Below, piece by piece: positions 21,859-56,812 of a stretch of DNA of 64,000 bases. This stretch comes from Octopus sinensis (lineage: Eukaryota): NCBI RefSeq assembly GCF_006345805.1, contig NC_043021.1, positions 9,796,001-9,860,000 of the forward strand, read 5' to 3'. Position 1 is the stretch's first letter; every line of letters begins with the position of its first letter. A program made the translations under genes and the position numbers. Under the pieces are notes generated by a model. The model worked only from the letters and a program-made list of their open reading frames with translations, made no database searches and had not been told where the DNA came from.

Positions 21859-22255
21859 ACTCTTTACTCTTACTCTTTTACTTGTTTCAGTCATTTGACT
21901 GCAGCCATGCTGGAGCACCGCCTTTAGTCGAGCAACTCGACCCCGGGACTTATTCTTTGTAAGCCCAGTACTTATTCTATCGGTCTCTTTTGCCGAACCG
22001 CTAAGTTACGAGGACATAAACACACCAGCATCGGTTGTCAAGCAATGCTAGGGGGACAAACACAGACACACACACATATATATACATATATATGACAGGC
22101 TTCTTTCAGTTTCCGTCTACCAAATCCACTCACAAGACTTTGGTCAGCCCGAGGCTATAGTAGAAGACACTTGCCCAAGGTGCCACGCAGTGGGACTGAA
22201 CCCGGAACCATGTGGTTGGTAAGCAAGCTACTTACCACACAGCCACTCCTGCGCC
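21859..22255 (-). mobile_element. SINE family A copy
   Basis: Full-length reverse complement of family A. Confidence 0.88.
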
Positions 22256-23129: not shown

Positions 23130-23472
23130 TCTTTTACTTGTTTCAGTCATTTGACTGCGGCCATGCTGGAGCACTGCCTTTAATCGAGCAACTCGACACC
23201 GGGACTTATTCTTTTGTAAGCCCAGTACTTATTCTATCGGTCTCTTTTGCCGAACTGCTAAGTAACGGGGACATAAACACATGCATATATATATATATAT
23301 ACATATATACGACGGGCTTCTTTCAGTTTCCGTCTACCAAATCCATTCACAAGGCTTTGGTCGGCCCGAGGCTATAGTAGAAGACACTTGCCCAAGGTGC
23401 CACGCAGTGGGACTGAACCCGGAACCATGTGGTTGGTAAACAAGCTACTTACCACACAGCCACTCCTGCGCC
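23130..23472 (-). mobile_element. SINE family A copy (a 5'-half copy follows at 23937-24099)
   Basis: Reverse complement of family A. Confidence 0.88.
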
Positions 23473-27155: not shown

Positions 27156-27250
27156 TCAAAGGTTGAAGTTTTCATGACAATTACTGACAAGGAAACGGAG
27201 GGCTGTTTGGAGCTCAAGGCCATTCATTAACGGCTCATTCCGGAATGGTT
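27156..27250 (-). CDS. DUF3715 gene last coding exon (EPFRNEPLMNGLELQTALRFLVSNCHENFNL*)
   Basis: ttctgcag acceptor after a pyrimidine tract; phase 1; TGA at 27158-27156. Confidence 0.72.
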
Positions 27251-27920
27251 CTGCAGAAGAAGAATTGAAAAATAAAGTCAATTAATAAATAAACAAAGAG
27301 ACAAGTAAACAAAATTTAATTGGCTTTGGGTAAAAGAAAATACAGGAGGATCAGTTAATTATGATTTTATTTAACATATTCCCATCTTAGATTCACGGTA
27401 CCCTTTAAGCCTGACACTTTTCGGCACCCCCTCATATATACATATATAAATAGATGTGTGTATTTTTCCCTTGTTAATTAACAGGGAAAAAATAGATAAA
27501 TAGTTACCAGGGTAGCAAAAAAATCACACAAGTAAAGAGGTTGTAACTCCTTGTTTTTAAAGGTAGAAAGAGGTTGTAACTCCTTGTTTTCAAAGGTAGA
27601 AACTTCAGGTTTACATGAAATTTTTTGTATAATATATAAATAAATAAATGGAGTTTTGTCGGAAGTAAAAGTATTTGAATTACACCTGTGTTAAACTCTA
27701 TTTATTTATATAAATATAAAAAGTTAATCCAAACAAGAAAGTACAAAAAAACACAACAACGCGAGGACGTGGAACAAATATAGTATTATTGGACGCTCAG
27801 GAAAGAAGGAAAGGAGGGTTTAATGTTTCAAGCCGAGTTCTTCGTTGGAAACATAGGAAAAGGAAAGATCCAGAGAAGGGAAGACAAAGGAAAAAAAATC
27901 GCCAACGGTACGCATGCGGT

Positions 27921-27975
<55 letters not shown>

Positions 27976-30410
27976 TAGGGTCAACATATTCCCCTCTCAG
28001 ATTCACACATTTATATCAGTGGTCCTTCAGTTTTTCTAAGCCCTGTAAAAGAACTCGGAAGGTTGGGCCTCCAACCAAGCCCTTCACAGTACCCTTAAAG
28101 CCAGGAGCTTTTCAGCACCCTCTTGTATATACACACAACCGACTTTAGTTTCCACTGATTTTGAGGGAGATTTGGTGGATGGAAACTCCATCATATGTAT
28201 ATGGAAAGTACTTGCGCCTCCTTAGATAGTTAGGAAGGCAAATCTTTGGGCCTGAGGCTTTAGTAGAAGACATTTGCCCAAGATGCAGCATCATGGGACT
28301 GGACCTGAAACCACATGGTTAGGAAGTGAACTTCTAACCCACGTGGCCACACCTGTGCCTATAAAGTGAAAAGCTGCCTGTGGGATTAGAACCCACAACC
28401 AAGGCAATTTGGTTTGTATTATGGAATCCTACACTGAGGCAAAATTTTCAGTAATGCAATGCTTTTGTAATATGAGCTGTGCCTGAAAGGGTTTTGTGTT
28501 TGCTCCAGCTGGCCTGGCCAACAACAACAGCAACAATCTTCAGGTTTCATTTCTTACTTCACAGAGGAAAGTGTAAGGATGACTATCCAGCCTATCAGCT
28601 AGCAATATGAATAATTACCTAGATATACTATGTCTGAATAAAAACAGAAAGACATGATGGTCATGGTTGGAACACTTTTGATCATAAGTCTGCTAGATCA
28701 AAGCTAAACTAAGGCTAAACAACAATTATAAGTCAAACCAAGTTACTTGGGTTATTATGAATGGTGACTTGATCAGGTGCAAGTGTGGCTGTGTGGTAAG
28801 AAGTTTGCTTCCCAACCACATGGTTCCGGGTTCAGTCCCACTGCATGGCATCTTGGAAAGTGTCTTCTACTGTAGCCTTGAGCCATCCAAAACCCTGTGA
28901 TTGGATTTGGTAGATGGAAACTGAAAGAAGCCCATTGTATATATGTGTGTGTGTGTGTATGGAACATTGCTATTGAGAGAAACAGTGACTATGTTGAGAA
29001 GTAGGGATGTGATCCACAGAGGACCAGCTTCATTTTGATGTATGAGGGGTCTTGAGCCTCAAAAAAAAAAAAAACATAGTACAAGACTTCTGATGATTTA
29101 TTTTTCGACATAGTCCCCCTTGATGGCTGATGACTTCCTCCAGCAGTGCTGAAGCACCATTATCCCAGCGTAGAGGAACTCCTTTGTTTGAAACTCCAAG
29201 AAACTTCCTACAGCACCTATGATGTCATTGTCACTGGCAAAACGGGGTCAATCTAATCAACTTACCCACCACTCCCGAACTTCCTGGCTTTGTGCCGAAA
29301 TTGGAGACCAATATTTATGCAATTGTATGCTCAGGTATGCATGTAGGATGAAAAGGGGAGATGAAATGAGGAAATGAAATAGTAAAGGATACAAACCTGA
29401 GCTGGTCATGCCCATAGAAAGCTGGCTGTTTGGAACTAAGGGAGGTGGAGGGAGAGCATTGCAGTCTTTGTTTTCCTTGAAAATTAAAAGAAATTAATCA
29501 ATTAATTAACCTAAATAGCTATACAGGGTGTTTTAGTTTTAGACAAAAAGTTAACCATAAGGGAAAAGGAGTAGTGTACATTAAATAAATCAACTCTTAA
29601 AATCAACTTCTTATAATGTTTCAAATGTTAATTAACTAACTTTTATAATGTTTTATAATAAACTAACGTTTATAATCTGTTGTGTCTGAGGAGAGACATT
29701 TTCTTTTTGTGCCTTATAATAAGTGGAAATTTTACCGGTGAGTGTGTTACATTATAAGGCACAAAAAGAAACTGACTCCCCCCAGACACAACAGAATATG
29801 CTTCAACACTTGAACTCATATAAAGAATCTTGCAAACAAAATCCAAAAACGAAATAACGTTTATAATGTTAATTAACTAACTTTTTCAGTGACATGTATG
29901 GCTGTGTACTTAAGAAGTTGGTTTGCTAACCATGAGGTTTTGAGTTTAGTCCCACTACACAACATCTTGGGCAAATGTCTTCTACTACACTTTGTGGTTG
30001 ACTAAGAGTTTGTGACTGGAATTAGTAGATGGAGAACGAAAAAGTCCTCTGTATATGTGTAGTAGTAGGAGAATAAAAAAAGTCCCTTGTGTATGTGTGG
30101 TAGATGAAGAATAAAAAAAGTTACTTGTGTATGTGTGCCTGTGTGTGAAGGTGTGTAGCCTAATGGTTAGCATGTTGCAGTTATGATTGCAAGATCGTGG
30201 TTTCAATTCCTGGACAAGGCAGTGTGTTTGTGTTCTTCATTTCAGTTTTAAATGCGCTTCCCTGTGAAGGGCTGGCCTCCTGTTTTATGTGAATGCCATG
30301 ATTTCAGTCACCTAACCAGTGAGGTAGCATCTTTCAAAAATCTACAACAATGTGAAGAAGCACATTGTGACCAGCTGTGTATAACAACATCAGATAGTCT
30401 GGTTGATAAT

Positions 30411-30459
<49 letters not shown>

Positions 30460-33400
30460 GTAAATCTTATAAGCAAATGAAAGACGTGTAATGGTGAATA
30501 AATAATACAAAAAAAATTCCCAGTTTCTCGTTTTGTTATACAATAACTCTGCAAATAATATTTCCATAATTCTCCATTTTAATATGTATTTTGAACTAAT
30601 GCACAGCAGCAACTGAGACTACATATTGGATAGTAATAATAGAATAATTAGCTGTGCTTCAAGAGGAAACAGCTGGAATTTATCCTAACTAGCGACACTA
30701 TATATATAATATACACACACCCATACAAACACACACACATATATGCATACACATACATATGTGCATACATATACATACATACAAATATACGTACATATAC
30801 ATGTATATATATATATACACATATATATATACATACACATACACACATATATGTAAACACACACAGACACATATGTGCATACATATACATACAAATATAC
30901 GTACATATACACACATATATACATATATGTAAATACACACAGACACATATACACACACATACATACACATATATAAATATACAATAAGACATGAAATAAA
31001 TAACCCTTAGTAATACGCAATTGTTTTACAGGTTGCCCTAAAGCTGCTATCTGGTGAACATATCCAAGAATTCTTGGAAAAGAATTAGAATAAAATTGTT
31101 GGAAAAATATGCTTACAAGAATATTTTTAACAGTGCTTCTATGTCCCTGGATGGCTTTGAGACTCTTGACAACGAATTCCTTATCTATATCTTTAATCAC
31201 ATCAGGATTTGCATTCATGTAGTCCAAGCAGCATTGATATTTTCTACAGGCTTTCTCGATGAGTCGCAAACGCTTTCTGTTTAGGAGACCAGTGAAATTT
31301 TCCAGAACACACTTGCGGCGCTCATGCAGGTTTATTTTGGTTGCCTGTAACGTTTGGAATTTCGGAGCATCATTGTTCTTCTGAGCGAGTTGCACCTCGC
31401 AGTTAATGTGATCGAGCACTTCTCGTAAAGTTACCAAACGCTCGACTGATTTGGTAGGAATCTTTCGCATAAGAATAAGGAAACAGCCTTCTGATGAGTA
31501 CAGACTGTCTTTTTCTTCAGCCAGGAGAAGACTAAGGGGAATCTTCTGGTGTGGAATTCCAATGCCATTCTTTTCCGCTGCTGACAACATGTTGGCTCGA
31601 ACTTTATGCACGGCACGTCTGACCTCAGGGTCTGTAATATTAGTATCCTCTTGCATCTCTACGTTGTTTGTGCTGTTGCTGTCATCATCTGAATCTTCTT
31701 GTGCCTCAGAAGAGGACAGTGAGTTATGGAGTCCCTCCTCCTCTGGTCGACGTTTCAACCATATGTTTTGCAAGAACTCTATGGAGTCAGACATAGACTT
31801 CAAAGAACTACAGATAGGAATACTGTCTAAATTAAAAGCTGCTGATTCGGAAGAAGAAGAAGGTGGCGGCATAGGTATTTTGGGAAACAAATTTGTTGGT
31901 TCGTTACCATTATTATTAATTGTTGGTGCCTGTTTCAATGCTTGCAACTGACTTTGAATTTTCTTTCGAATCTTTTTTCTTCTTGTTTTTGACATTGTAT
32001 CGAATCGTGTGTCTAATGATACACCGAGGGTTTTCTTAATAATATTGTATTCAGAACAGCCTTGTTCGACAAACATCTGAACATATTCATCTATAGTATC
32101 AAAGGAGCTGCATTTCTTCTCCTCTTCTTCTTCCAGAGGTTCTTTCAACTGCTTGGCAGTTTGTTCCAACAGTTCTTCATAGCTTATATCTTTAACCTCC
32201 GCCTTAAGCTTTTTCTTCTTGCTGTTAGAGAAAGGAATCGAACCATCTTCTAACCAAGAGGATGCATCACCAGGGAACGGTTGTTTCCCTCTGTAAGCTC
32301 TCCCACCCAGTTCTGATTTAGGATCCTTAGTTGACAGCCTGTCAAAAACGCTTTTACCATGTTTAGGAAACCGTTGCATTGGGCCTTCCATTTCATTTGG
32401 AATCCAAGCATTAAATTGATTAAATTTGGTAACATTGCCAACCATATTATCGTTATCACAGTTAAAGGGGTCTCCTTTATCAGAGCAGTAACCACTACTG
32501 TTGCCAGGGAAGAAATTTTCTGATTGGTTATATTGGAAACCTTTATCATAGAAGTAGTCATCAGTTTTCTCATATAGGAATCCATCAATTTTATCCTGGC
32601 AGTAGTCATCTGGATTATGGGATGGTTCGTGTTTCTTGAATGAACGACGTCGCGTTCTCTTAAAAGGATATTTATTTGACTTCCCGCGAGGATAATTTTC
32701 AGATTTTCCTCTGGGAAACTTTTTATGCTCCTCATTATAATAACCATCAGATTCCATTTCGTAGTTTTTAGAATCTTCTGGCAAGCAATTACCCATTTTA
32801 TTCGGAGGGAATGGTGCAAACTTGCCCCCATGCGGATAATGACCACGTTTTCCATGGTAGTTCTTAGGTTTCCCTCGCTTATTGCCATCGGATCGACCAC
32901 AAGAATAATTTTCCATTTGGTTATGTGGAATATCCTCAGGCATATTGTATGGGAAGCTATCATCATGTTCTGGTGGATAATTATCCATCTGATTCATTGA
33001 ATAACCTTCAGGTTGAGGGAAAGGACAGTCTTCCATTCTGTTGTGTGGAAATGGCTCAGCTCTTTTTAAAGGAAAACAGTTACGCGAGAAACCTTCAGGT
33101 TGTTCAATTGAATAATTATCCATACAAGCATGTCGATATCCATCAGGCTTATTTTCCATATCCCATGGCATATCTCTTGGTGGTCTGCCAGGATTAGACT
33201 CATAGAACCTCTCATCGTTTGGATGGTCCCTTTTATCATGCCACCATCGCTCCCTTGGGTAGTTATCAAGTGATTCCGACCGTCTCAAAGGCTCAAAACT
33301 TTCTTTTGCATTCATATCACAATCATCATCCTCATCAAGTAGTTCTCCTTCTTCTAGCTCTGAGTCACAATTCTGTTCATTCTTCTCATCATCACCATCA

Positions 33401-36400
33401 TCTTTTCCTTCTACTTCTTCTTCTTTCTTTGAAGACTTCTTTGACTTACTGCCACTGTTTGTTCGAGCTACATTGGGCACGTCAGTCTTTTCGCTGCCCT
33501 TCTGTTTATAATTAATCACTATAGGAGGAGCATCACTGCTTCGACCAGCTTTCTCTTCTGCCTCTGTCTTCACAGGTTTCCAAAGATTCTCGGCCCATTT
33601 TTTCTCAGAGGATTTATGATGCTTTGATCGGCTAGAACTTTTTTCCCCAGATGATCTTTTGCTGCCTGACTTCTGCTGTTCTTTCTTGGCCCACGCAGCT
33701 CTCTCTTTGTCGGACATAGCAGACGTCTTTCCCGCAGGCAGATCTCCACTGCTTTCAGAAGGCTGTGATGCCAGTTCCTTCTTGATTTTTTTCACCGATT
33801 CCAACAGTGCTTGGAGATCAGATTTATGCTGCTTCCGTTTTGAAAACTGCTTTGCTAGTTCTTTGAGGAGTTTCCTGTTAGATTCCGGCAAAGAAGCTTC
33901 TTTTAGCTTTCTTGAATTAATAGTAGATATCTGAACAGACTTTGGAATCGGATGCGACGAGTCATCATGCTTGCTTCGTTTAGACTGTTTACTTTTTGAG
34001 GAATTGGATGATTTGCTCCTTTCTTTACTGCTTCGTCTTTTCTTGGCGCCCATATATGATAAAAGTTTGGATACTTCGTTATTAATATCATCTGATGCTG
34101 CATTATCAGAGAGCAGATCCACATCCTGCGAGGCATTAAGACCTTCAGTTGCAGACGTGTGATCATCAGTACTCTGTTTTGAGGTGTCGGAAATTGTACC
34201 AGCAGCTGCATCATTCTCATTATCACAATCATTACTGTCTACTGAACTCAGTTCTTTTCTAGAGGCTTTACTATACGCTGGTATAGCAATCTCGGGCATT
34301 GCATTGCTGTTAAAGGAGTCTGGTATCATTGAAGGTAAAAACAGCTCGTTTGAGGAAGATTTTTTCATTTTCGCATTCTCGGCCTTTTCAGCCAAACCAT
34401 CTTTTGAAGATTCCGAAGATTGAGAATGATCAAGACATGATAAAGAGGAAAGCTCCAAAGTTTTATCAGTTGGACTATAACAAGAAGACCTGCTTAATTC
34501 ACATTTTTCTTTCTCCCGATCTTTAGTAGACTGCAATTCTGAAATTTCCAAATTTGCATTTTCAGAGTCATTGGAAGCATCTGGTTTCGAATTTCTATCT
34601 GTCTCTTTGGAAAGAGTTTCTAATTCTGAGCTACTTGCAGTCACAGCTTTTTTAGCAGGATCTGATGATGATGTTGATGGTGAAGATAATGATGATGTTG
34701 ATGATTGAGCAACATTTACAGATGACATCTGGCTTTTGGGATTGATTTTGTCAGCAAACCAATCAACTAAATCATTTTGTCTTGGGACCATTAGAGGGTT
34801 AATGGGTCTGTTCAGTAAGAGTGGATTTGTTGCAGTTAAACCTGAGCCAGGAAATCCAACAGGGAATGGCATACTCTTGCTCAATAGCGACTGAGACATG
34901 CTGAGTGCGGGAGACCAGAGAAGCTGCTGTGAATGGAGGGAAGTAGCCAAATGTGAGGTTGAGGGAGGAATTGACCAGTCAATGTTTTTCAATGGGTTTG
35001 AAGATACCAAAAATGGTGACGGTGTGGGAAGCCAGTTTGGTGGAGGAAAGAGTTTCAAAGAAGAGAAAGCAGTGGGTGATTGAGATCTAGCTCTTTTCAC
35101 TGATGTTCGTTTCTTTGCTGGTCTAAGGACTGGTATAGCCTGACCTGACATACATTCATCTATTTGGTCGTCACCATCGTTACCAGCGTTCGTCATACTG
35201 TTCATTTCATCAGTTGTCTGGTGAGTTGTACTGTGCATATCAGTTACCGTTTGGTTTTTCTTATTTGCTACATTTGAATCAGCAGTGGTTTTGTTGAAAT
35301 CTTCTTTTCCTCCTCCTTGAATCTTCAACACAGTTTCAGTGAAATGCTTCCCCCTCTCCTCCTCAACCCCACACTTGGACTCCACAGCTGACTCACTCTT
35401 TTTTCCATTGCTGTCAGCTTGCCCTTTATTGTTCGTATCACAATTTGGGCTGACCGGTGAGTTGCTGTCCTTACTTCCTTTCACAACTTTGCGCAGCATG
35501 TCCATCATTTCATCCGATATGTTCAACGACACAGCTTTCGCTTGGCTCAATGTTGTCAGACTCTTCATCCAAATATGAGAAGTGTCGTTTGACGAGTCTT
35601 CGTGTCCTTTGTACTCATAGGCACTAAACAGTTTGCCAGGATCAGAAGACGATGCTTTTTCCGAACCTTCATCTTTCGCTTCTGATGGAGAAACTGATCC
35701 AAAATCTTCATTTAAGGACTGGAAAAGGTTTTTGGCTTTTTCATGAGATTTTTGTTGGTGAGACAAGTTTTTCTTATCTGACTCACTCTTACTGGCTTTA
35801 CCACTATGCATAGAAGGCAGTTTCCAACTTGTTGCATCACAACTGTCATCATCATCATCATCATCATCATAGCTGTCAAGAGATTTTAACATCTCTTTAA
35901 TTGGGGAAAGCCGATGATCATTATTATCTGAATGTGTACCGCTAGCACTTTCATCAATATACAAAGGCTTCGTAAGGTCTTCGTTGGAATTATCACTATC
36001 GTCACTATCCGCATTCATGCAGTGTCCGGGTGAGAATGCTCTCATGCTACTGTTTCTTTCTGAATTCAATTTGCCCTCACTGCCAGGTTTCTGCTTTGAG
36101 ACCAAAAGCTTCGAGTCTTCCTCTGACACTGAGTTTGTGTCATCAGATACAGATTTTCGTGGCAACATCTCTCTGTAGAATCCCCAGGTTTTATGATCAT
36201 TTCCAGGTTCGTTTTGTGGAACAGACTTCACTTTGGCTGGTTCTTCATTTCTCTCTGGTGAAACTGGAGAATACATTTCCCCTTTCTCAAGTGAAATAGA
36301 AGTTGAGGGCTTGAAGCCCTTAATTATTTCTTTAGAAAATTTGGCATAATCTGGGATGTTATCTTTAGAATGTGGCTTTTCTTCAAAAGAAAGTTTGGGA

Positions 36401-42400: not shown

Positions 42401-43974
42401 TGTCTGGTCTGCAACAGTTGGTAGCAGTATTGTTGTCTTTAAACCTGTTTTACCAGACAGGGCTGTGTTTTTTATTTTTGGAGTGACTCTCACCAAAGCG
42501 CCCTGAGTTGAATTTGTCAGACCACTCTTGTGTTCTTTTGATGCTTTTAGTTTAGAGTGCACAACGTCTTTTAGTTTCTTCAGATCCTCGATAGACATTT
42601 TGTTCAAAGAGTGTTTCTACAACAGGAAATATTTTTTTTTAAATACTATTTTAAAAAAAATGATCATTTCTAACAAAAGGTACAAGATCACAAATTTGTG
42701 AGTTAGAAGAGTACTGGTTCTCAGTGCTTAACAGGTAATTATTGACTCCTTAAAACAGGCGTCAAGGGACTTTTTTAAGCAATTACCCCAAAATATATTT
42801 ATTTTCTCTGACATTATCCCACTGATTTGAAAGGAAGAAAATCATAGGTTCTTTGAATTCAAAAGGATCATTGACTCTATTTTATTGAATCTAATTTAAA
42901 CATCCATTACACTGGACAGATGCAGTGTTGCCAGAAAGAAAATTTCTGTTGTAACAAGCAACACATTTTTTATATAATTTTACTTATGTCTAATGAGTTC
43001 TCATTACCCCCAAGAATTTCATTTTTTACCCCGGTTCACCAACCCCGCTGCCTTAGAAAAATGAAAAGCAAGGTCAAGCTCAGAGAATTAGTTTAAACAA
43101 ATGCAAAGGGACTTAACAACAAATCACAAGGCATTTTAGCAGACTCTACTGATTCTGTTAGCCACCTCTTCCTCACAATGAAATAAAAATTTTGCTTTCT
43201 TACTATGAGCAGAGGTTCAAACTTTGTGTTACATTGATTACGTTGTATGACATAACTAATAGTCCCATGTTACATAAATGAAATGAAATAACTATCAGCT
43301 GTATTTCAAAGCAGGTTGCAGACTTTAATGATAATACTAGCATCAACAACAACGATGGTCAAGTAGAATTGGTTCAAAGTCAGACTTTGGTAGTTTTGAC
43401 CCTGGCATACTTGAGATCAAACCCTACTCAACATTTACAGGAACGTGGACATTGAGAAATGAGAACGATGAGAATAATGGTAAGTGTGGTGTTGAGGGAA
43501 GAGGAAAAGAAGACAAAAAAATAGAAGACACATGGAGAGAAAAATAATGATGAAGGAGGCACAGGCGTGACTGTGTGGTAAGAAGTTTACTTCACTACCA
43601 CAAACCACACAGCTCTAAGTTCAGCCCTGCTGCATACCATGTTGGGTGAATATGTTCTGCTTCAGTCCTGGACCAACCAAAGATTTGTGAGTGGATCTGG
43701 TAGATGGAAACTGAAAGAAGCCCATCATTGCCGGTGGCATGTAAAAAGCACCATCCAAACGTGGCCGATGCCAGCGCCACCTTGACTGGCATCCATGTCA
43801 GTGACACGTAAAAAGCACCCAATACACTCACGGAGTGGTTGGCATTAGGAAGGGCACCCAGCTGTAGAACATTGCCAGATCAGACTGGGCCTGATTCAGC
43901 CTTCTGGCTTCCCAGACCCCGGTGAAACCGTCCAACCCATGCTAGCATGGAAAACGGACGTTAAACAACGATGA

Positions 43975-44019
<45 letters not shown>

Positions 44020-47000: not shown

Positions 47001-50000
47001 ACGCAACGACTACTTTCCATTCCATTCAACCGTTGTTGATGCCCCATTGAATGAACAGCTCAGCATTAGACTGGTTCTAGGCCTACCTGTCCACAATGAC
47101 CAATTATGGGTTATACAAGTAACTCTTGACATCAAGTTCTGACTATCACCACTTAGGAGAATTTTGAACCCAGACTAAAAAGAGCAAGGACCTTTCTGCA
47201 AGTCATCTTATGCAATATAAATAATTTTGCCAATCCACTGCCCAGCACTGGGACTTCGTTTCATCAACCCTAAACGGATGTAAAGCAAAGCTAACCTCAG
47301 CAGTGTTTTGAACTCAACAGTGCAGAGAGCCAGGACAAACATTGCATGCCATTCTATCCGATGCACTAATGATGCACTCCGTTCACTGTCTTCAATAACC
47401 AACACTCTACACTGATCATTGACACAATAATTTACAGTGTACGACTAGTCTGACAACAATTTATACTGGATATCTAGCCCAATGCTTACATCAACAGAAC
47501 TTATTGCAAAATAATTTGTTCAACAGCTGTTGTCTCAAAACAATTTTCACTAGAAGTCTAGGTCTAAGCCATTATAATCATCATTTAACATCTGTCTTCC
47601 ATGCTGTCATGGGTTGACAGTTTGACAAGAGATGGCAACCCAGAGGACGGTGCCAAGCTCTATTGTTTGTTTTGGCATGGTTTCTACCGCTGAACACCTT
47701 TCCTAATCCACCCCCGAAACAATTTATACTTCAGCTCCAGATCCAATCTTTTCAAAACAATTTATATGAGAGATCTAGCTTCTGACAACAAAAATTTACA
47801 AAGATCCTTTATTAAACTGAAATATTTGCGACTTTTTGTTTTTACAACCATCGTCCTATGGACAATTCATGCATCAACATGTGAAGAAAGCCAGGAAAAT
47901 CCACAAACCTGTGAACGTTGCATTTGAATGATATGAATATCTGAGAGTTGAGGTGGTTGAAGTCCCACATGGCAGTCATAGTTTGGTGTGGGTTCAATAC
48001 TAGACATCAGTCGTTCGTTTACAGGTTTACATTTACCCGTTAATACCTAAAATGTAATAGATGAAAAAAAAATCAACATATCAATACATATGAAAATATA
48101 TGGTAACACATGTGTGATGATAGACAGGCAGATACAAAGTGTGATGGGATGAGGGAGTGGAAAGGAGAAGGGTTTCACTTATGTAAAAAAAGATTATTAT
48201 AAGTTACCAACAGCATAATATCATACAGAACAGAAGATATCAACTACTTGGTGTATCATTTTATTAGGAGGTTGCCATAAACCAGTTCAAAGAAGGCTTT
48301 TATTCAAACGTTATTTCTGCTCGCAATCTAATCCGTTAATTACTGCTGTTCAACGATTAAGACGCATTGTTTTATATTAAATAAAGATAGTATCCATCTA
48401 TCAACGTCATTTGACATTAAGCCGCATGTTTGTACTCAATACAAAATAAGGTAAAGGCGGCGAGCTGGCAGAAACGTTAGCACACCAGGTGAAATGCTTT
48501 ATGGTATTTTGTCCACTGCTGTGTCCTGAGTTCAAATTCCGCCGAGGTCAACTTTGCCATTCATCCTTTCGGGGTCGATAAATTAAGTACCAGTTACACA
48601 CTGGGGTCGATGTAATCGACTTAATCTGTTTGTCTATCCTTGTTTGTCCCCTCTATGTTTAGCCCCTTGTGGGCAATAAAGAAATAACAAAATAAGATAT
48701 CGATATTTTTATCTATTATTTACCATTGTAGAAAGGAATTAATGATAGGATATTACAATTCATAACAGAGGTAGTCAACAAGATCAATTTAATCTATTGG
48801 CATCAACATTGCTATTCATCAATTGGTCCCAATGGATAGACGAAAAATAAAAGTAAAGAATAAAATGTGTAAACTTACATTAAATACAAAAAGTGCAGTT
48901 GTTAACTGATTTGAAATGGTTTCAACCGTCTGCAAACTGACATCTGCATGCTTGGACAAATACACACCAGAATTATGATCTCCTGTTAATAGATTTGAAG
49001 CGAAGTTGTGACAACAATAACAATATCAATTAAACACAGAACATGGTACCAAAAATATGCCGACCTTCCAGAATGTCAAAACATGTTGGACTTTCATGTT
49101 GGAAACTATATAATAGGTTAATGAGAGAATGGGTGGTTACACACTAAATTTCTATAGCAGCTTCAGATCCTAAGTTATTGATTTGGGAGAGAAGCTGGGT
49201 TCAGCAAGTAACAAATCTTGAAACTGTCTGTCAAGAGACTCCCCAACTCCTTTTTCTTACTTTACTCAGAATCAGGCTTCGTAATATTTAAATTTATTTC
49301 AGTTCTTCTGATTAATGCTCTGCCATGCTTGAAATATATGTATTGCTTCATTAATGATGAGCTGTGAAAAGTACAGATATGCAAATTAGGCTATTCACTA
49401 ATGTGCTAGCTTAATTTATGATTGCTATATATATGACAAATGTAGAGGCGCGTGGCTTAGTGGTTAGGGTGTTGAACTCATGATCGTAAGGTTGTGGTTT
49501 CGATTCCTGGACCAGGCGATGCATTGTGTTCTTGAGCAAAACACTTCATGTCATGTTGCTCCAGTCCACTCAGCTGGCAAAAGTGAGTAATCCTGCAATG
49601 GACTGGCACCCCGTCCAGGTGGAAAATTTCTACGCCACTGAAACTGGGAAACCGACCCTTATGAGCCTGGCATGGCTCAAGAAGGAACATTTATTTATTT
49701 ATATATAACAAATGAAGATTCTATGTCATTTATTGGGGGGGGGGGGAGAAGCTGGTACGTGTTGTCTGAGGAACAATCACTTTAGTAAAACTAAATATCA
49801 AAGAACATTATCTAAACTGTGTATCATAATATATTATCAACCTCAAAGAGATAAAAAGTACAATCAACTTTAGCATGATTTGAATGCAAAGTCTTGCAAG
49901 CAGCATGGTGACCTCAAGAGTTCTGGTGGCATGTAAAAAGCACCCAGTAAACATGGTAAAGTGGTTGGTATTAGGAAGGGCATCCAGCCATAAAAACTGT

Positions 50001-53000
50001 GCTAAAGTAGATACTGGAGCATGATACAGTCCTTGGATTCACTGGATTCTGTCAAACCATCTAATCCATTACGGAGATGTACTTGCATAGCAAGTGACCT
50101 GATCTGAGATCGTGTGCTGGAACGAAAACAATTCCAGCACAGAATTTTGTCAGTGAACAGGTCGCAGTCTCAAAGCAACGAAAATATTTTGGCAAATTAA
50201 ATTTAAATGTTGAAGTGAATCTAACGGTTTTTGTGTATTTTTTAAATGGCTTATAAACACCTTCCATGCTGCAATTGTCATCTGATCCATATTAGCATGG
50301 AACGTGGACGTTAAATGATGATGATGAAGGCAAAATATGTAATGATATATATTTAACTTACCAATGATACTAAATGGCAGATTATTGGTTGTTAAACCAT
50401 TTTTGGCTATCTTTGGAACATAGGAAGGGTCTCTGATCGCATAAAATGCAATTTGATCACTAAGCTCACGGTTATGTCGACCTTCTTCTTTTAATTCAGT
50501 ACGCTTGCTTCTGTAAAAGTAGAATTAAATTACATTTGAGAAAAAAAGAGAAAAAACAAAAAGAAAATGTGAGTTAATGAAGAAATTTTCTTTAATAAAT
50601 TTTAATTAAGAGCTTTACAGTTTCAAAATAGAAACACTACCATTATGAACCAAGAAGGTTAACAACAACAACAAAAAATTTCAACTGAGAAAACCTAGAA
50701 AGGTTTTGTTGCTCTTTATCAGTTTAACATTCTTTGATGAATGCTTTTGAAACCAACCTGCTTGCAACCATCCTTGGTTCTATGATATAAATTCCTGCTT
50801 GACTAATTTTACTAAATTTTTTACTATTTTCAAAATTACTTGAAACAAAATCTGTGTATTTAAGCAGAAAGATTAATCCCTAACCCGGCAAAGATGAGTT
50901 GTCTTCACCTAATTTGTCTTTTTCAGAGTGCGATGAGTAAACCTGTCCAAAACATATAATTTCAAAAACAGCCACAGACAATTTTATATGTCAATCAGCG
51001 GTTTTACTCTTTTACTTGTTTCAGTCATTTGACTGCGGCCATGCTGGAGCACTGCCTTTAATCGAGCCCGGGACTTATTCTTTTTGTAAGCCCAGTACTT
51101 ATTCTATCGGTCACTTTTGCCGAACTGCTAAGTAACGGAGACATAAACACACCAGCATTGGTTGTCAAGCAATGCTAGGGGGACAAACACACATACGCAT
51201 ATATATATATACATATATACGACGGGCTTCTTTTCAGTTTCCGTCTACCAAATCCACTCACAAGGCTTTGGTCAGCCCGAGGCTATAGTAGAAGACACTT
51301 GCCCAAGGTTCCACGCAGTGGGACTGAACCCAGAACCATGTGGTTGGTAAGCAAGCTACTTACCACACAGCCACCCCTGCTTCTATTTATTTTATTTTAT
51401 TTTTTCTAACAAATTATGCCCAGATGTTGAGCTGAGAAGATGACAGTGAGTATGAACCTTCTATTAGAAGCTTGGATACATCAGATGAGAGTGCAAGCTC
51501 GTCTGATAATGGCTATTCTCTCTTAAGTGAGGAGGATAGATGAATTTGGTGCTGGAAGAATGCATGCTTCTTCCACCACCATGCTTCCCATTCACTGGAA
51601 ATATTGGAATATCAATTAATCAAGGCACAGCTGGTATGATTTCTTTGGATTTTTTTAGTATTTTTGGTGACAAGAAAATTATTGATCAAGTTGTGCACGA
51701 AACTATTTTATTTACATTTACTTTTGGTTATGAAAATTGAAAACAAAATAAATAAATATATATATAAAAAATGAGTTTTGAGAAGGCATGCTAAAAAAAG
51801 AGTAAAATAAATGTGTAATTCCCCATTACTTTTGATGATAAAGTTGGATAATAAAAAGCAATCAGTAAAAAATATTTTTAAAATACGGGAAGACGAGTTA
51901 TCTTGTTTTTGCCAAAAAATGGCATCTTCAAAATAAAATTTCAAATAAAATATTGGAAATAGATAAAAACAAAAGTTATTTCCATAATCAGCACTAAAAA
52001 TACTATAAAAAAAAGCAATAAAAAAATTCGTCTGAAATTGAAATGTTTTCTACAAAAAAAGTCACTGGAGAAGGGGTTAAACGTGCAGTTGTCTGAACAA
52101 ACATATTTGTCTGGTCAAACACATGGTGATCTAAGTATATTCGTCTCACACACTTGTCTAATGAAATACATCTGTCTGATTAAACACATCAATCTAACAC
52201 ACGTCTGACTAAACAGACTTGTCTCTCTTGACTTTAGCACTGTTACAGCTAAGTATTTCATGAAATTATAAACAGTTATTTTACACAGAGAACTGTTTAG
52301 TGTTCTTCCAAAATACAAGAAGTACAAATTTTAGTAAAAACACAATACAGCTACGATAAAATAGAGAGGCAAATGTCTCTAACGAGCCTACAATCTTGTA
52401 TAATCATTCTGATTAGATGTGTGTGTGCATGCATAAGTTCAAGTCATTATAACATGACATTACATTTCAACAGACAAATTGTCATTATGATTAAGTTGAA
52501 AGTTTTAATTTCACTAATCATCTAATACTTGATTATTTTAAAAGTTAAAACACAAAATGATTGATCTAGTGTTTTATTATGTTATATAATAAACATTAAA
52601 CATATAAGCTGATGCTTTCTGAAACCTATTTCATTGTGAATATTTTTTTAATGCAAATGATTGACAGAGAAATCAAAATTTCCCTGAAGTCCTTTTGCCT
52701 TAAGTAAAATCAAATGCTTTTTTTCAGATCTATAAATAATAATAAAAGGTAAATTTTCTTTTTTTTTTTAATTTTAAAATATGTTCAAACCTATAGTCTT
52801 GTTCCAGTTCTGTATTTCGGACTGAGTGAATCGCTTGAATCTGCCAAGGCCCACAATAATTTTGGTCGAGGTAGGACCGAGTAACGTTTGCAAGTATTTC
52901 TTTTGCATCTCGGCTCTTTGGGTCAATTTCAAGCAAATTGTCTGAAACATAAAAATAGACCAACTTGTACCTGGCTGTATGTGAATATGTGTAAGTGTAT

Positions 53001-55481: not shown

Positions 55482-55518
<37 letters not shown>

Positions 55519-56812
55519 GAAAAGAATGCAACAGATTAAAAATTTCAGATTTTATCTTGTAAACTAACATATTTTGCCAACTTTAATCAGAACAAATTAT
55601 TTATAAATATATGCATAACATTTTAAAGAATTTTTGAAATTAAACACACACAGTAACTAGAATTCCATAAAATGAATACATAAAATAAAGGTAGAATATT
55701 GGCTTCAAATTTTGGCCCAGGGCCAGCTTTTTCAGGGAAGGGATTAGACAGCTATTTCGGGAGGGATGGGGGAGCTATCCAGTTATTTTGGGGGAGGGGC
55801 TATCCAGCTATTTCGAGGGAGAGACTAGCCAGCTATTTTGAGGGAGGGGTTAAGTTGATCACATCAACCCCAGTGATCAACAGGTACTTATTTCTTCAAC
55901 CTTGAAAGGATGAAAGGCAAAGTCAACCTTGGTTGAATTTGAACACAGAATGTAAAGATTTTTAAGCATTTTGCCCAGTGTGCTAAAAATTCTGTCAGCT
56001 TACTGCCTCGTAAAAGTAGGATATTAATAATATAAATAAATGCTATTTGCATATGTGTGTATTTATCAATCTCACTGTATTTACTAGACTGTCAGGTATT
56101 GTTATACACTGTTAGTCACAATGCATATCCTTTCATTGTCACAGATTTCAAATGATGCCACTTTGCTGGCCAATGTTCCCACTGAATGGAATGCTAGTCC
56201 ATTACGGCATTACCCATTTATGCCAGAGTAAACTAGAGCAATGTGAAATTATATGTTTTACTCAAAAACACAATGCACCACTGGTCTGGGGATTGGAACC
56301 ACAATCTTGCAATCAATATGTGCAACACCCTAACCACTATGCCATCTGCCTTCAAACACACACACACACAGCTGTGTGATAATGAAGTTCACTTCATAAC
56401 AATGTGGTTTCGAGTTTTATCCCATGCATGGCACTTTGAGCAAATACCTTCAACTATAGTCTTCAAAAGAGCAATGCCTTGTAGGGAAATTGGTAAATGG
56501 AAACTGTACAGAAGCCTATTGAATGTGTGTGTGTGTGTGTATGCATATGTGTGAACGTTTATTTCCATGTGTCTTTGCAATTTATTGTTTGGGCAACAGC
56601 AATGTTATATCAACACATGTAAACAATATACCATTGGGCAGTTTTGGCATGTGAGGCTCATATTGAGACGGAGGTGGGGAGCATGTAAAAACGAAATTAA
56701 GAATGAAACAAGGCACACAAAAATAATTAAACAAAATCTTTGTATGTTTACCTTTTGTAGCTTGACGTTTTAACTTTGGTATGTTAAAATTAAAGGTCTG
56801 TGAGGTTTCCAT
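27156..56812 (-). CDS. Large (~3496 aa) DUF3715/pseudo-PARP protein of the TASOR/TEX15 family; coding exons 56812-56752, 52941-52791, 50510-50362, 48982-48879, 48046-47909, 45933-44395, 42616-42398, 40752-39988, 38307-31117, 29475-29397, 27250-27156
   Basis: The exons join in frame (10491 nt including stop) with GT-AG sites. The N-terminal ~230 aa reads FNIPKLKR..SRDAKEILANVTRSYLD..NTELEQDYRSKRTELKEEGRHNRELSDQIAFY..KIAKNGL..IIGDHNSGVYLSKHAD..FNVLTGKCK..EPTPNYDCHV..SQIYLYEYDDEGMPAPRPRHCLPYAVITY. This matches my recall of DUF3715 in TASOR (xYFYE..RPRHxCPYAVV) and TEX15 (VYFYEY..KPRQCLPYAIV). The rest is mostly low-complexity S/P/K/D/E-rich sequence. Confidence 0.88.
29041..29243 (-). mobile_element. 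mariner transposase C-terminal fragment plus right TIR
   Basis: FASDNDIIGAVGSFLEFQTKEFLYAGIMVLQHCWRKSSAIKGDYVEK* matches the mariner C-terminal GDYVEK motif; end reads TATGAGGG (~TACGAGGG). Confidence 0.8.
29397..29475 (-). CDS. DUF3715 gene penultimate exon (ENKDCNALPPPPLVPNSQLSMGMTSS)
   Basis: ttttcaag acceptor; GTTTGT donor; phase 0 to 1, which bridges the flanking exons. Confidence 0.7.
29677..29854. mobile_element. Second copy of the self-inverted retroposon, 13-bp TSD
   Basis: Arms 29677-29720 / 29751-29794; TAACGTTTATAAT at 29664-29676 and 29855-29867. Confidence 0.78.
30698..30985. repeat. Mosaic (CA/TA)n microsatellite
   Basis: Low-complexity CA/TA mosaic; many other (TA)n tracts, e.g. 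16847-16908, 27925-27963, 43978-44017. Confidence 0.95.
31117..38307 (-). CDS. DUF3715 gene giant exon, 7191 nt / 2397 aa
   Basis: Uninterrupted frame; poly-T + tag acceptor at 38309-38308; donor CTT|GTAAGC at 31116. Confidence 0.9.
39345..39490 (+). repeat. Degenerate telomere-like (TTAGGG/TTTAGGG) tract
   Basis: Multiple GGTTAGGG / GTTTAGGG variants. Confidence 0.75.
39493..39820 (+). repeat. 31-bp minisatellite, ~10.6 copies (AGACCGTATGCTAAAGTGTCAATAGCCAGGT)
   Basis: Strict 31-nt period, near-identical units, no spacers. Confidence 0.95.
39988..40752 (-). CDS. DUF3715 gene exon (ETALQSE...DCIKQ), 255 aa, basic NLS-like RRRRKRQK
   Basis: ttttgtag acceptor; GTGAGT donor; phase 0. Confidence 0.9.
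40896..41298 (+). mobile_element. Non-autonomous Helitron/Helentron-like element
   Basis: 5' AACTAGCAGTATCGCCCGGCGTTGCTCGGG (short hairpin); internal ~90-bp duplication; 3' ...ACACACAACTTGACTTTTATATATAAAGAT. Confidence 0.55.
41643..42053 (-). mobile_element. SINE family A copy
   Basis: Reverse complement of family A. Confidence 0.88.
42398..42616 (-). CDS. DUF3715 gene exon (KHSLNKMSIEDLKK...DQTE)
   Basis: gtag acceptor; GTAAGT donor; phase 0. Confidence 0.85.
44395..45933 (-). CDS. DUF3715 gene exon (IYLYEY...ESTK), 513 aa
   Basis: Open frame inside ORF 44389..46083; ttcag acceptor; GTATGA donor. Confidence 0.9.
46037..46439 (-). mobile_element. SINE family A copy
   Basis: Reverse complement of family A. 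Confidence 0.88.
47909..48046 (-). CDS. DUF3715 gene exon (VLTGKCK...EPTPNYDCHV...RSQ)
   Basis: ttttag acceptor; GTTTGT donor; phase 0. Confidence 0.9.
48451..48686 (+). mobile_element. SINE family B with 10-bp TSD
   Basis: ACAAAATAAG at 48441-48450 and 48687-48696; many decayed copies elsewhere (e.g. 19745-19955, 20800-21180, 62330-63165). Confidence 0.88.
48879..48982 (-). CDS. DUF3715 gene exon (GDHNSGVYLSKHAD...FVFN)
   Basis: aacag acceptor; GTAAGT donor; phase 1 to 0. Confidence 0.9.
50070..50278 (+). mobile_element. Penelope-like pLTR-type repeat carrying a hammerhead-like motif, inserted into SINE C
   Basis: TSD-like CATCTAATCCAT (50058-50069) / CATCTGATCCAT (50279-50290); second copy at 10298-10529. 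Confidence 0.72.
50146..50196 (+). ncRNA. Minimal type-I hammerhead ribozyme-like motif with G3/C8 core variant
   Basis: Helix I TTTGTCA/TGGCAAA; core GTGAACA + 1-nt insert; helix II GTCGC-loop-GC(A/G)AC; GAAA; palindromic AATATT helix III; UH = TT. Confidence 0.6.
50362..50510 (-). CDS. DUF3715 gene exon (SKRTELKEEGR...PFSII)
   Basis: tttacag acceptor; GTAAGT donor; phase 2 to 1. Confidence 0.9.
50877..52076 (+). mobile_element. piggyBac-derived relic (transposase N-terminal remnant), interrupted by SINE A
   Basis: Acidic stretch then PPCFPFTGNIG..SLDFFSIFGDKKIIDQVVHET (PGBD-like FTG..DFF..FF..IV.ETN); right end AAGGGG|TTAA at 52071-52080; weak left end TTAA|TCCC at 50873. Confidence 0.55.
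51003..51380 (-). mobile_element. SINE family A copy inside a piggyBac relic
   Basis: Reverse complement of family A. Confidence 0.88.
52791..52941 (-). CDS. DUF3715 gene exon (DNLLEIDPKSRDAKEIL...LEQDY)
   Basis: ttcag acceptor; GTTTGA donor; phase 1 to 2. Confidence 0.88.
53234..53356. repeat. ~53-bp-arm palindrome with 13-nt loop (MITE-like)
   Basis: Arms 53237-53289 and 53303-53356 pair with 3 mismatches. Confidence 0.9.
53754..53976. mobile_element. piggyBac-type MITE, same family as 17788-18079
   Basis: TTAA at 53750-53753 and 53977-53980; TIR ~CCCTTTCRTTAC. Confidence 0.8.
54810..55171 (+). mobile_element. SINE family A, diverged copy
   Basis: Same head/core/tail order with many substitutions; another at ~63496-63747. 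Confidence 0.75.
56752..56812 (-). CDS. DUF3715 gene, first coding exon (METSQTFNFNIPKLKRQATK)
   Basis: Acceptor AG at 56827-56826, 13-nt UTR, ATG at 56812; donor GTAAAC phase 1; the FxIP(K/R) motif typically precedes DUF3715. Confidence 0.75.

Follow-up and report, generated by a model that had tools for sequence, protein, structure and literature searches.

An Intact Octopus sinensis Gene of a DUF3715 Subfamily So Far Found Only in Molluscs, With a Possible Role in Transposon Silencing

The window, meaning the whole stretch of 64,000 nucleotides of Octopus sinensis DNA analyzed here, carries an intact gene for a giant protein in which an N-terminal DUF3715 domain is followed by ∼3000 disordered residues and a C-terminal helical bundle of ∼180 amino acids. 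The reading adopted, with slightly better than even confidence, is that the gene belongs to a DUF3715 subfamily found so far only in molluscs and that its product is presumably a large, non-ADP-ribosylating nuclear scaffold in transposon silencing.

Gene Structure

The gene runs on the minus strand from an ATG at 56812, with an in-frame stop four codons upstream, to a TGA at 27156-27158. An 11-exon model (56812..27156) splices in frame and comes to 3496 aa, exactly the figure of the sequence-only reading; its 10491 nt contain one stop, at the end, and every intron is GT..AG. The introns are full of repeats. The exons are as follows, with a slash marking an exon boundary in the text below.

56752..56812, minus strand: exon 1, aa 1-20, start ATG 56812, phase 1 out
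52791..52941, minus strand: exon 2, aa 21-70, encodes the start of the pseudo-PARP domain; splice sites (AG/GT) and phase are compatible, and the junction aligns without a gap
50362..50510, minus strand: exon 3, aa 71-120, carries Y94
48879..48982, minus strand: exon 4, aa 121-155, GVYLSKHAD motif and Y128
47909..48046, minus strand: exon 5, aa 156-201, EPTPNYDCHV motif and Q201
44395..45933, minus strand: exon 6, aa 202-714, the first 34 aa finishing DUF3715 (YLYEY..RPRHCLPYAV, Y207)
42398..42616, minus strand: exon 7, aa 715-787, phase 0 in and out, open frame between TTGTAG and GTAAGT
39988..40752, minus strand: exon 8, aa 788-1042, phase 0 in and out, 255-codon open frame between TTTGTAG and GTGAGT
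31117..38307, minus strand: exon 9, the giant exon, 7191 nt, aa 1043-3439
29397..29475, minus strand: candidate exon 10, 26 aa, ENKDCNALPPPPLVPNSQLSMGMTSS, whose use gives 3496 aa
27156..27250, minus strand: candidate terminal exon 11, 31 aa and TGA, good acceptor CTTCTTCTGCAG, open frame to the TGA

Comparison with relatives establishes how exons 1-6 are built and where the giant exon ends. Exons 1-6 and their junctions are confirmed by mollusc orthologs without alignment gaps, and the junctions also agree with the alignment to the TASOR structure 6TL1. Exon 1 contains a conserved F-x-IPK-x-K-R motif upstream of the Pfam domain boundary, and at the exon 1/2 junction FNFNIPKLKRQATK/DNLL aligns with Mytilus FNFNIPKIKRQATKDNLR right across. 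The donor of the 7.2-kb exon (KNIL/GTAAGC) is confirmed by a related Logan contig (P0005/L001), in which similarity ends at KKFL/GTGAGT; a 10-exon, 3507-aa model was superseded when this homolog placed the end of the giant exon at 31117. Only open frames, a compatible phase 0, and splice sites that fit the consensus speak for junctions 6/7, 7/8, and 8/9, and neither exon 7 nor exon 8 has homology support. The 10.5 kb of coding sequence contains no frameshift and no premature stop, and an open exon of 2397 codons in DNA of 38% G+C cannot have arisen by chance.

The 3' end is drawn more tentatively. Exon 10 (29475-29397) was picked as the best-scoring of the phase-compatible intermediate candidates, and its equivalent was found in no ortholog. 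The 57 aa of exons 10 and 11 have no homology support among the orthologs, because these stop shortly after the giant-exon donor: of the 12 that have the C-terminal domain, 10 terminate 0-12 residues beyond the KNIL-equivalent position, the two longer models continuing for 171 and 335 residues. Candidate exons 10 and 11 are probably at least partly wrong.

Conserved Domains and Mollusc Relatives

Three conserved segments can be placed in the protein.

45832..52927, minus strand: DUF3715/RDTS pseudo-PARP domain, aa 26-235, over exons 2-6
31924..32103, minus strand: conserved helical and basic motif, aa 3111-3170, FDTIDEY...KTRRKKIRKKIQSQLQALKQAP
31117..31647, minus strand: C-terminal helical-bundle domain, aa 3263-3439

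Sequence comparison shows that the N-terminal domain is homologous to those of TASOR and TEX15. It matches the whole of Pfam PF12509 (DUF3715), positions 1-150 of 150, with E=1.3e-26 and a score of 93.8 bits (cutoff 28.5), and TASOR in PDB 6TL1 over query residues 26-233 (E=2.1e-26); together with the relatives described below, these matches bear out the membership of the TASOR/TEX15 superfamily that had been proposed from motifs, all three of which are present in exons 4, 5, and 6. A DUF3715 profile matches five separate minus-strand open frames corresponding to exons 2-6 with E=1e-6 to 1e-13 (exon 2, 4.9e-11; exon 3, 1.5e-13; exon 4, 1.2e-6; exon 5, 7e-12; exon 6, 5.7e-13), a control that is partly circular because the profile was built from the relatives and the window's own domain.

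Residues were mapped through the 6TL1 alignment, with offsets that fit all five published TASOR residues (L130, L184, Y217, Y295, and Y305; PMC7532188), and the PARP triad positions were taken from Table 1 of PMC7955679. The triad of the window protein is Y94-Y128-Q201 (Y-Y-Q), in place of H-Y-E in active PARPs: Y94 lies at the position of the catalytic His and corresponds to TASOR L184, Y128 corresponds to TASOR Y217 and the triad Tyr, and Q201 lies at the position of the catalytic Glu. With this triad, the domain is probably non-catalytic. Y207 corresponds to TASOR Y305, so that the tyrosine is kept; Y305 is essential in TASOR silencing, which is lost in Y305A and deletion mutants of TASOR (PMC7532188), and in the silencing of LINE-1 by TASOR, the DUF3715 domain of TEX15, from human as well as from zebrafish, can stand in for TASOR's own (PMC10578480).

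Beyond DUF3715, exon 6 is low-complexity or disordered and has no Pfam match, and the middle of the protein as a whole is basic, serine- and proline-rich, and fast-evolving. Exon 9 consists mainly of S/K/P/E-rich disordered sequence, with the conserved domain at its C-terminal end. Several NLS-like basic clusters, at aa 912 (RKKKK) and 937 (RRRRKRQKMRRK) in exon 8 and at aa 2663, 2926, and 3149, hint at a nuclear protein. The motif at aa 3111-3170 is helical (AF2 pLDDT 70-79), near-identical in P0005, and partly alignable in the Logan-derived P0013; it may be a nuclear localization signal or an interaction helix.

The C-terminal bundle is common to 12 relatives (11 named bivalve or gastropod proteins and one Logan-derived) and to the Logan homolog P0005, with which the identity is 57%. 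Its profile recovers the window open reading frame (E=9e-61) and, with E between 1e-50 and 1e-65, the orthologs, and its AF2 model reaches pLDDT 95.2 and pTM 0.84. No match was found in Pfam, among PDB sequences, by fold, or to the TEX15 domain. By these profile matches, the bundle is conserved among the mollusc relatives and found so far only in molluscs, in line with the lineage-specific architecture that the sequence-only reading had suspected.

An exhaustive search returned 370 relatives, the top ones being giant mollusc proteins, which their sources label 'TASOR pseudo-PARP domain-containing' or 'uncharacterized.' The closest are from bivalves and gastropods, with 41-50% identity in the DUF3715 domain, which agrees with the earlier attribution of the DNA to a mollusc. 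Orthologs include those of Mytilus edulis (XP_071129133), Solemya velum (KAL5019177), Argopecten irradians (XP_069124491), Dreissena polymorpha (XP_052265729), Aplysia californica (XP_005089273), and Lottia gigantea (XP_009065871), and they are 37-50% identical to the window protein in the N-terminal domain and 19-29% identical in the C-terminal one. A scallop has a separate gene (P0062, XP_021376454) in which DUF3715 is followed directly by SPOC; the window gene, by this comparison, is therefore a paralogous lineage distinct from the TASOR-like genes, and the proposal that it is a pro-orthologue of the whole family fails.

Proposed Function and Alternative Readings

Like TASOR and TEX15, the window protein would be a large nuclear scaffold without ADP-ribosyltransferase activity. 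Its pseudo-PARP domain would provide the effector step when the chromatin of transposons is silenced co-transcriptionally, under the direction of RNA. Where HUSH has its SPOC-DomI/MPP8/Periphilin module and the piRNA pathway the TEX15 domains, lineage-specific partners would be brought in here by the disordered body and the C-terminal bundle. The transposon-silencing role, or the HUSH/piRNA-like system suggested earlier, is an inference from one shared domain, as the other domains that tie TASOR to HUSH and TEX15 to MIWI2 are absent. Against this reading, TEX15 also has meiotic DNA-repair phenotypes, so that silencing is not the sole activity known in the family, and the C-terminal bundle has no structural or sequence analogue pointing to a partner.

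A possible but less probable reading is that the window protein is a protostome TEX15 orthologue, the TEX15 lineage being bilaterian; its place would then be downstream of a nuclear PIWI, where it would serve the piRNA-directed silencing of transposons and possibly meiosis as well, and the mollusc bundle would replace the TEX15 domains or be their unrecognizably diverged form. In phmmer, vertebrate TEX15 representatives (E=1e-35 to 1e-31) rank above all TASOR and TASOR-like representatives (E=1e-31 or weaker), domain distances average 1.52 to TEX15 and 1.76 to TASOR-like proteins, small indels are common to the window protein, TEX15, and amphioxus and not TASOR, and 79% of the NJ bootstraps of an unrooted tree separate the TASOR-like clan from the sequences of molluscs, amphioxus, and TEX15. 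The layout, with its N-terminal domain, giant exon, and long disordered body, is TEX15-like; since the scallop has a separate SPOC-containing TASOR-like gene, the second gene could by parsimony match the second vertebrate lineage, and a 2026 preprint takes cnidarian DUF3715-only genes as truncated Tex15 homologs. However, no TEX15 domain was found by Pfam (E≤10), by custom TEX15-domain profiles in all frames of the window, or by hhalign profile-profile comparison (probabilities 0.2-0.6%), which places the protein outside the published definition of TEX15, a family defined as vertebrate-specific (Schopp 2023; PMC10578480). The distance between TEX15 and TASOR (1.57) is also close to that between TEX15 and the molluscs (1.52), so that the three clans are nearly equidistant in a tree without a root, and group-specific HMM scores differ by just 7 bits.

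It is rather improbable that the protein is a DUF3715-family nuclear scaffold whose main role lies outside transposon silencing, for instance in meiotic or DNA double-strand-break repair or in general gene regulation. Mouse TEX15 was first described as required in meiotic double-strand-break repair and synapsis, according to a study cited in PMC11377751 (its reference 31), one amphioxus relative has a GO-derived double-strand-break repair label, a TASOR-annotated gene responds to behavior in the snail CNS (PMC12294990), and nothing in the window sequence names transposons as targets. Against this, silencing is the only experimentally defined activity of DUF3715, lost on TASOR deletion or Y305A and rescued by TEX15 domains, and the window protein conserves the Y305-equivalent tyrosine.

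That the protein is a mollusc or cephalopod TASOR orthologue, as a HUSH core, is very improbable. TASOR is the only solved structure matched by the window protein, and RefSeq labels a relative from Pomacea (a gastropod) 'protein TASOR-like'; the reading is nevertheless already contradicted by the absence of SPOC-DomI, the defining feature of TASOR-like proteins (PMC10578480), and by the different scallop gene with DUF3715 and SPOC. Neither SPOC, DomI, nor a recognizable DomII/PIN was found in the window protein by Pfam or a custom profile, which agrees with the earlier remark that no SPOC domain could be seen. The TASOR-like SPOC-DomI profile, built from 63 proteins and recovering 66 of 67 group members, found no match in the window, where the best E among 1594 open frames was 2.5.

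An artefact, whether a pseudogene or DUF3715 exons misjoined to the unrelated giant open frame of a neighboring gene, is scarcely credible: homology supports neither the three middle junctions nor the last two exons, and the introns are repeat-filled, but both conserved ends occur in one protein in 12 annotated relatives (11 named molluscs), the long coding sequence is uninterrupted, and both ends are under constraint, as seen in their identity to bivalve proteins and to P0005, respectively.

Comparison With Known Systems

Judged by its domains, the window protein is neither TASOR-like nor TEX15. TASOR, TASOR2, and the invertebrate TASOR-like proteins have the order DUF3715-SPOC-DomI, with or without DomII/PIN, and belong to HUSH complexes. 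TASOR shares with the window protein an end-to-end DUF3715 (6TL1), the Y305 equivalent, the YxYEY...RPRHxxPYAV motif, and a Gln at the third triad position, whereas the domain starts at ∼20 in the window protein and at ∼70-110 in TASOR, and the window protein is twice as long.

TEX15, a vertebrate protein in piRNA/MIWI2-directed transposon methylation, combines DUF3715 with one or two TEX15 domains (PF15326). Like the window protein, it has DUF3715 near the N-terminus, is very large (2000-3200 aa) and mostly disordered, and has lost the PARP His and Glu; the TEX15 protein is also largely encoded by one giant exon. With its extreme N-terminal DUF3715, giant exon, and long disordered body, the layout of the window gene is nearer to TEX15 than to TASOR, as had been noticed from the giant exons, and among the named families the DUF3715 of TEX15 is slightly nearer to the window's than that of TASOR. 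The TEX15 triad is L-Y-S against Y-Y-Q (PMC7955679), and the window protein has the bundle of its mollusc relatives where TEX15 has TEX15 domains.

ZAP/PARP13 and other inactive PARPs have the PARP fold in common with the window domain at a weak sequence level (E=0.009) and, like it, no longer have NAD+-binding residues; with the Pfam PARP model the match (E=0.005) stays below the cutoff. ZAP/PARP13 is a different family, alike at the superfamily level only, with no zinc fingers or WWE domains in the window protein.

The mollusc orthologs have the same extreme N-terminal DUF3715, long non-conserved middle, and C-terminal helical domain, 10 of the 12 models ending in this domain. They range from 1433 to 4536 aa, against 3496 aa in the window protein, which forms with P0005 the most divergent branch, in keeping with a cephalopod origin though no proof of it. 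The newness assumed in the sequence-only reading is reduced, as invertebrate DUF3715 proteins have already been described (Schopp 2023; PMC10578480), and the architecture seen here is a variant among them.

Gene structure

The locus proves to be an intact minus-strand gene under constraint. The giant protein that it encodes begins with a PARP fold and closes with a conserved helical bundle. The sequence-only reading had proposed 11 exons encoding ~3496 aa, and the rebuilt model recovers this structure (11 exons, 10491 nt, 3496 aa, every intron GT..AG), with all of the motifs quoted in that reading located in the spliced product. The open-frame listing of the window contains three long frames:

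30685-38295, minus strand, open frame of 7.6 kb
39979-40719, minus strand, open frame
44389-46083, minus strand, open frame

Exons 1-6 are well supported by comparison with known sequences. The spliced N-terminus shows no gap at any of the five exon 1-6 junctions when set against the TASOR crystal-structure sequence (6TL1) and mollusc orthologs, the exon 1/2 junction (KRQATK/DNLL) is nearly identical residue by residue to Mytilus KRQATKDNLR, and a DUF3715 profile, whose rows comprise relatives and the window's own domain, matches exons 2-6 as five separate minus-strand frames (E=1e-6 to 1e-13). For junctions 6/7, 7/8, and 8/9 the only guides are the open frames, compatible phase 0, and splice-site consensus, in a part of the protein that is not conserved.

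The end of the giant exon (exon 9) is placed by P0005, a homologous protein encoded on a 1216-bp Logan contig (L001, run SRR9969974), which has 57% identity across the C-terminal ~300 aa. The similarity stops precisely at KKFL/GTGAGT, and the giant exon of the window therefore ends at KNIL/GTAAGC, position 31117. An initial 10-exon, 3507-aa model with a weak donor at 31005 was dropped, as P0005 and L001 place the true donor at 31117. Without splicing at this donor the frame continues for ~140 codons into a TG/TA microsatellite, and this read-through accounts for the raw ORF of 2536 aa. The TG/TA-rich microsatellite (30690-31005, minus strand) adjoins the giant exon downstream and is open in the exon frame (YIYICVCMCV...), which makes it a pitfall for ORF-based gene calling. 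The giant-exon donor in L001 (TTG/GTGAGTTGA, 1066-1080) is followed two codons on by an in-frame stop, and an unspliced L001 transcript would terminate in KKFLVS; the C-terminal tail may thus vary by species or be optional. The KNIL-equivalent position lies 0-12 residues before the protein end in 10 of the 12 orthologs with the C-terminal domain, and the remaining two ortholog models extend 171 and 335 residues beyond it. Exon 29475-29397 is the top-scoring phase-compatible candidate between donor 31117 and the terminal exon. Exons 10 and 11 (57 aa) are unsupported by these comparisons and are candidate exons only; a brief extension beyond KNIL is expected in their place.

Repeats and a mariner-like sequence

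A SINE-like interspersed repeat of ~170 bp occurs in at least 15 copies in the 64-kb window (74-87% identity between copies, both orientations) and is present in several introns of the DUF3715 gene. It has no tRNA-like head (ARAGORN) and no Rfam match, and tRNA and Rfam scans of the whole window are empty.

Positions of copies of the ~170-bp repeat
302-479
2108-2236
5412-5569
15221-15360
22066-22256
23301-23473
23930-24100
28249-28363
28775-28956
29899-30061
41887-42049
46268-46443
51211-51380
54816-54983

A second repeat family is found at 29672-29856 (last intron) and at 13155-13382, 16 kb downstream of the gene (85-91% identity), and its two orientations lie side by side, which suggests an inverted-repeat element. 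The stretch 29101-29247 (minus strand), some 150 bp further downstream than candidate exon 10, encodes a peptide ending in ...FLEFQTKEFLYAGIMVLQHCWRKSSAIKGDYVEK and a stop, which seems to resemble the C-terminus of a mariner/Tc1-type transposase; it has no Pfam match. Candidate exon 10 is not repeated elsewhere within the window, and it may be transposon-derived sequence if the mariner-like peptide is real.

The N-terminal pseudo-PARP domain

The DUF3715 domain claimed for the N-terminus in the earlier reading is confirmed by Pfam (PF12509, 93.8 bits against a cutoff of 28.5, E=1.3e-26, model 1-150 of 150). The pseudo-PARP domain of human TASOR (PDB 6TL1_A) matches with E=2.1e-26 (query 26-233 vs chain 7-212), taking in ~50 N-terminal residues absent from the Pfam model, and the next PDB matches are inactive and mono-ART PARP domains at E>=0.009 only. 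TASOR residues were mapped onto the window protein with offsets of 109 and 118 on the 6TL1 chain, under which all five TASOR residues of Douse et al. (PMC7532188) land on the correct letters.

TASOR residues and their equivalents in the window protein
TASOR L130: window V40
TASOR L184 (PARP His position): window Y94
TASOR Y217: window Y128
TASOR Y295: window M196
TASOR Y305 (beta8-beta9 loop): window Y207, YLYEY aligned with YFYEY

The TASOR alignment and the published triad table, which lists L-Y-Q for TASOR and L-Y-S for TEX15 (PMC7955679), give the window protein the triad Y94/Y128/Q201 (Y-Y-Q) vs the H-Y-E of PARPs. The loss of both the His and the Glu of active PARPs argues that the domain is most likely a pseudo-enzyme. 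Mutation of TASOR Y305 abolishes silencing, for which this residue is needed (PMC7532188), and the equivalent tyrosine is retained in the window protein (Y207). With all four of the features tested present, the protein belongs by its sequence to the DUF3715/RDTS superfamily.

Exon 1 (56752-56812, minus strand) also encodes a short F-x-IPK-x-K-R motif, which closely precedes the structured domain and is not covered by the Pfam model. The motif is kept in the mollusc family, amphioxus, vertebrate TEX15, fish TASOR, and scallop TASOR-like proteins, and the whole superfamily may share it as a functional element that annotation has missed, e.g., an NLS or docking motif.

Relatives of the window protein

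The N-terminal domain, run as query in an exhaustive HMMER search, returns 370 relatives, the best 150 of which were clustered by their remaining sequence with DUF3715 masked, and representatives were named. Among these best 150, group 1 (n=67) contains vertebrate TASOR and invertebrate TASOR-like proteins, including the scallop protein P0062 (XP_021376454), where Pfam places SPOC directly after DUF3715. Group 2 (n=30) contains vertebrate TEX15, with bat TEX15 serving as a positive control (DUF3715 and two TEX15 domains, 457 bits). Group 3 (n=14) contains the window protein and 13 relatives, 1433-4536 aa long. Apart from one unnamed Logan-derived sequence, these relatives are named proteins from bivalves or gastropods, with the source labels 'uncharacterized' or 'TASOR pseudo-PARP domain-containing'. 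A mollusc affinity of the window protein is clear from these sequences. The next closest by domain are annelid (Owenia) and amphioxus proteins, both without the C-terminal domain. A word-indexed search returns four short, unnamed, low-complexity fragments only for the N-terminal query and one Logan homolog for the C-terminal query.

Two public annotations of relatives are misleading. The name 'serine-rich adhesin for platelets-like' of P0163 (Littorina XP_070185062) is a low-complexity artefact, and the GO phrase 'regulation of double-strand break repair via homologous recombination' on P0028 (Branchiostoma KAI8521605) is presumably carried over from TEX15.

Disordered body and C-terminal domain

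Outside DUF3715, Pfam finds nothing in the window protein at E up to 10 on sub-fragments, and PDB sequence searches with the other ~3200 residues give no match. The body from aa ~235 to ~3100 is composed of 57-76% disorder-promoting residues (S 13%, K 10%, P 8%), cannot be aligned with orthologs, and contains several basic clusters. A stretch at aa ~2720-3000 (about 33270-32430, minus strand) is aromatic- and proline-rich with loose D/E-N-Y-P/S and F-P repeats (for example, ...MDNYSIEQPEGF...MDNYPPEHDDSFPYNMPEDIPHNQMENYS...ENYPRGKSNKYPF...), and possibly forms an array of short linear motifs.

Conservation returns in two blocks towards the C-terminus, namely a helical/basic motif at aa 3111-3170 and a ~180-aa domain at aa 3263-3439. 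A profile of the latter matches the window protein at E=1e-61 (aa 3264-3440) and 12 of the 13 other group members at E=1e-50 to 1e-65 (11 named bivalve or gastropod proteins and the unnamed sequence), and elsewhere among the best 150 of the 370 relatives it reaches E=0.17 at best. AlphaFold2 on a trimmed 14-sequence alignment folds the domain with pLDDT 95.2 and pTM 0.84, predicting a compact bundle of one helix, a short irregular segment, and then four long helices; a run on the last 413 aa, for which two sequences were aligned, was not usable (pLDDT 44). Foldseek finds no solved analogue in the PDB (best E=0.42, TM 0.27), and its matches to bacterioferritin and 14-3-3 were rejected as noise from generic helical bundles (E>=0.4, TM<=0.3). 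Profile-profile comparison (hhalign) with both TEX15 domains, TEX15 tails, and amphioxus tails gives probabilities <1%. One and the same protein thus carries DUF3715 within its first ~30 residues and, at its C-terminal end or close to it, the ~180-aa domain. This combination defines, in the present analysis, a mollusc DUF3715 + C-terminal-bundle subfamily.

Origin of the lineage

The domain tree (neighbor-joining, 140 sequences, 234 columns, 200 bootstraps, unrooted) splits the TASOR-like clan from the mollusc, amphioxus, and TEX15 sequences in 79% of bootstraps, with the mollusc clan lying outside TEX15. The clans are nearly equidistant in domain distance (mollusc-TEX15 1.52, mollusc-TASOR-like 1.76, TEX15-TASOR 1.57). 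Bootstrap 'sister' tests on an unrooted three-clan tree measure clan support only, and no sister-group claim is therefore made. The window family appears to be a distinct lineage slightly nearer TEX15. The earlier description of the protein as a possible pro-orthologue of the whole family is wrong, because a scallop has a separate TASOR-like gene. The duplication predates molluscs; this matches the placement of the TEX15/TASOR-like split in early metazoans (Schopp et al., PMC10578480).

It is rather unlikely that the mollusc family is the protostome counterpart of TEX15. If it were, nuclear co-transcriptional silencing guided by piRNAs would have had a TEX15-type pseudo-PARP effector before vertebrates arose, the C-terminal bundle would be an ancestral or alternative partner-docking module, and a non-vertebrate route to the biochemical function of RDTS would exist in animals with piRNAs in soma and germline.

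Proposed function and significance

The basic clusters and the family suggest that the window protein would be nuclear. There it may serve as a scaffold on which chromatin is silenced co-transcriptionally; the pseudo-PARP domain would provide the conserved effector element, and lineage-specific partners would bind to the bundle and to the disordered body. The DUF3715 domains of human and zebrafish TEX15 can stand in for that of TASOR in LINE-1 silencing (PMC10578480), which is the best experimental basis for transferring function to the window protein. A silencing role would nonetheless be extrapolated from one domain, and it has a realistic competitor in a function in meiosis or repair, or in some other role at chromatin.

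Invertebrate DUF3715 proteins with and without SPOC-DomI have already been published (PMC10578480), cnidarian DUF3715-only genes have been termed truncated Tex15 homologs (bioRxiv 10.64898/2026.09.07.749791), and orthologs of the mollusc subfamily are already deposited, unnamed, in RefSeq and UniProt. What appears to be undescribed is how the subfamily is built, with a C-terminal domain of its own that folds with high confidence, is absent from Pfam, and has no PDB analogue; no work combining cephalopod or octopus with TASOR or TEX15 is among the top-ranked literature matches. The result is not evidence of a new silencing system and will be unsurprising to specialists. DUF3715 (RDTS) is essential to transposon silencing by HUSH and the mammalian nuclear piRNA pathway, and the subfamily offers a comparative handle on its biochemical function. 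Genome annotation also gains a corrected gene model and a domain definition for proteins labelled 'uncharacterized'.

Comparison with TASOR and TEX15

TASOR-like proteins are defined by the order DUF3715-SPOC-DomI (Schopp et al., 2023, PMC10578480). The sequence-only reading saw no SPOC domain, and the searches agree: Pfam detects none, and a custom SPOC-DomI profile (built from 63 proteins and recovering 66 of the 67 TASOR-group members) gives no match to the protein or to any of the window's 1594 open frames, where the best value is E=2.5, which excludes hidden intronic SPOC exons. Whereas TASOR carries SPOC-DomI directly after DUF3715, the window protein lacks it and, on its sequence, is not TASOR-like by the published definition. 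The DomII/PIN and the Periphilin- and MPP8-binding regions of TASOR have no Pfam or PDB match in the protein, such regions being poorly modelled in these libraries. TEX15 has one or two TEX15 domains, whereas none is detected in the window protein by Pfam (PF15326, E<=10), by custom TEX15-domain HMMs against all window frames (best E = 0.3), or when the C-terminal domain is compared by hhalign with the domains and tails of TEX15 (probabilities 0.2-0.3%), and the protein is consequently not TEX15 by the published definition. The mollusc relatives present a third architecture beside those of TASOR and TEX15, in which the domain and its critical tyrosine are kept and every other module is swapped, which shows DUF3715 to be the portable, conserved core of these giant scaffolds.
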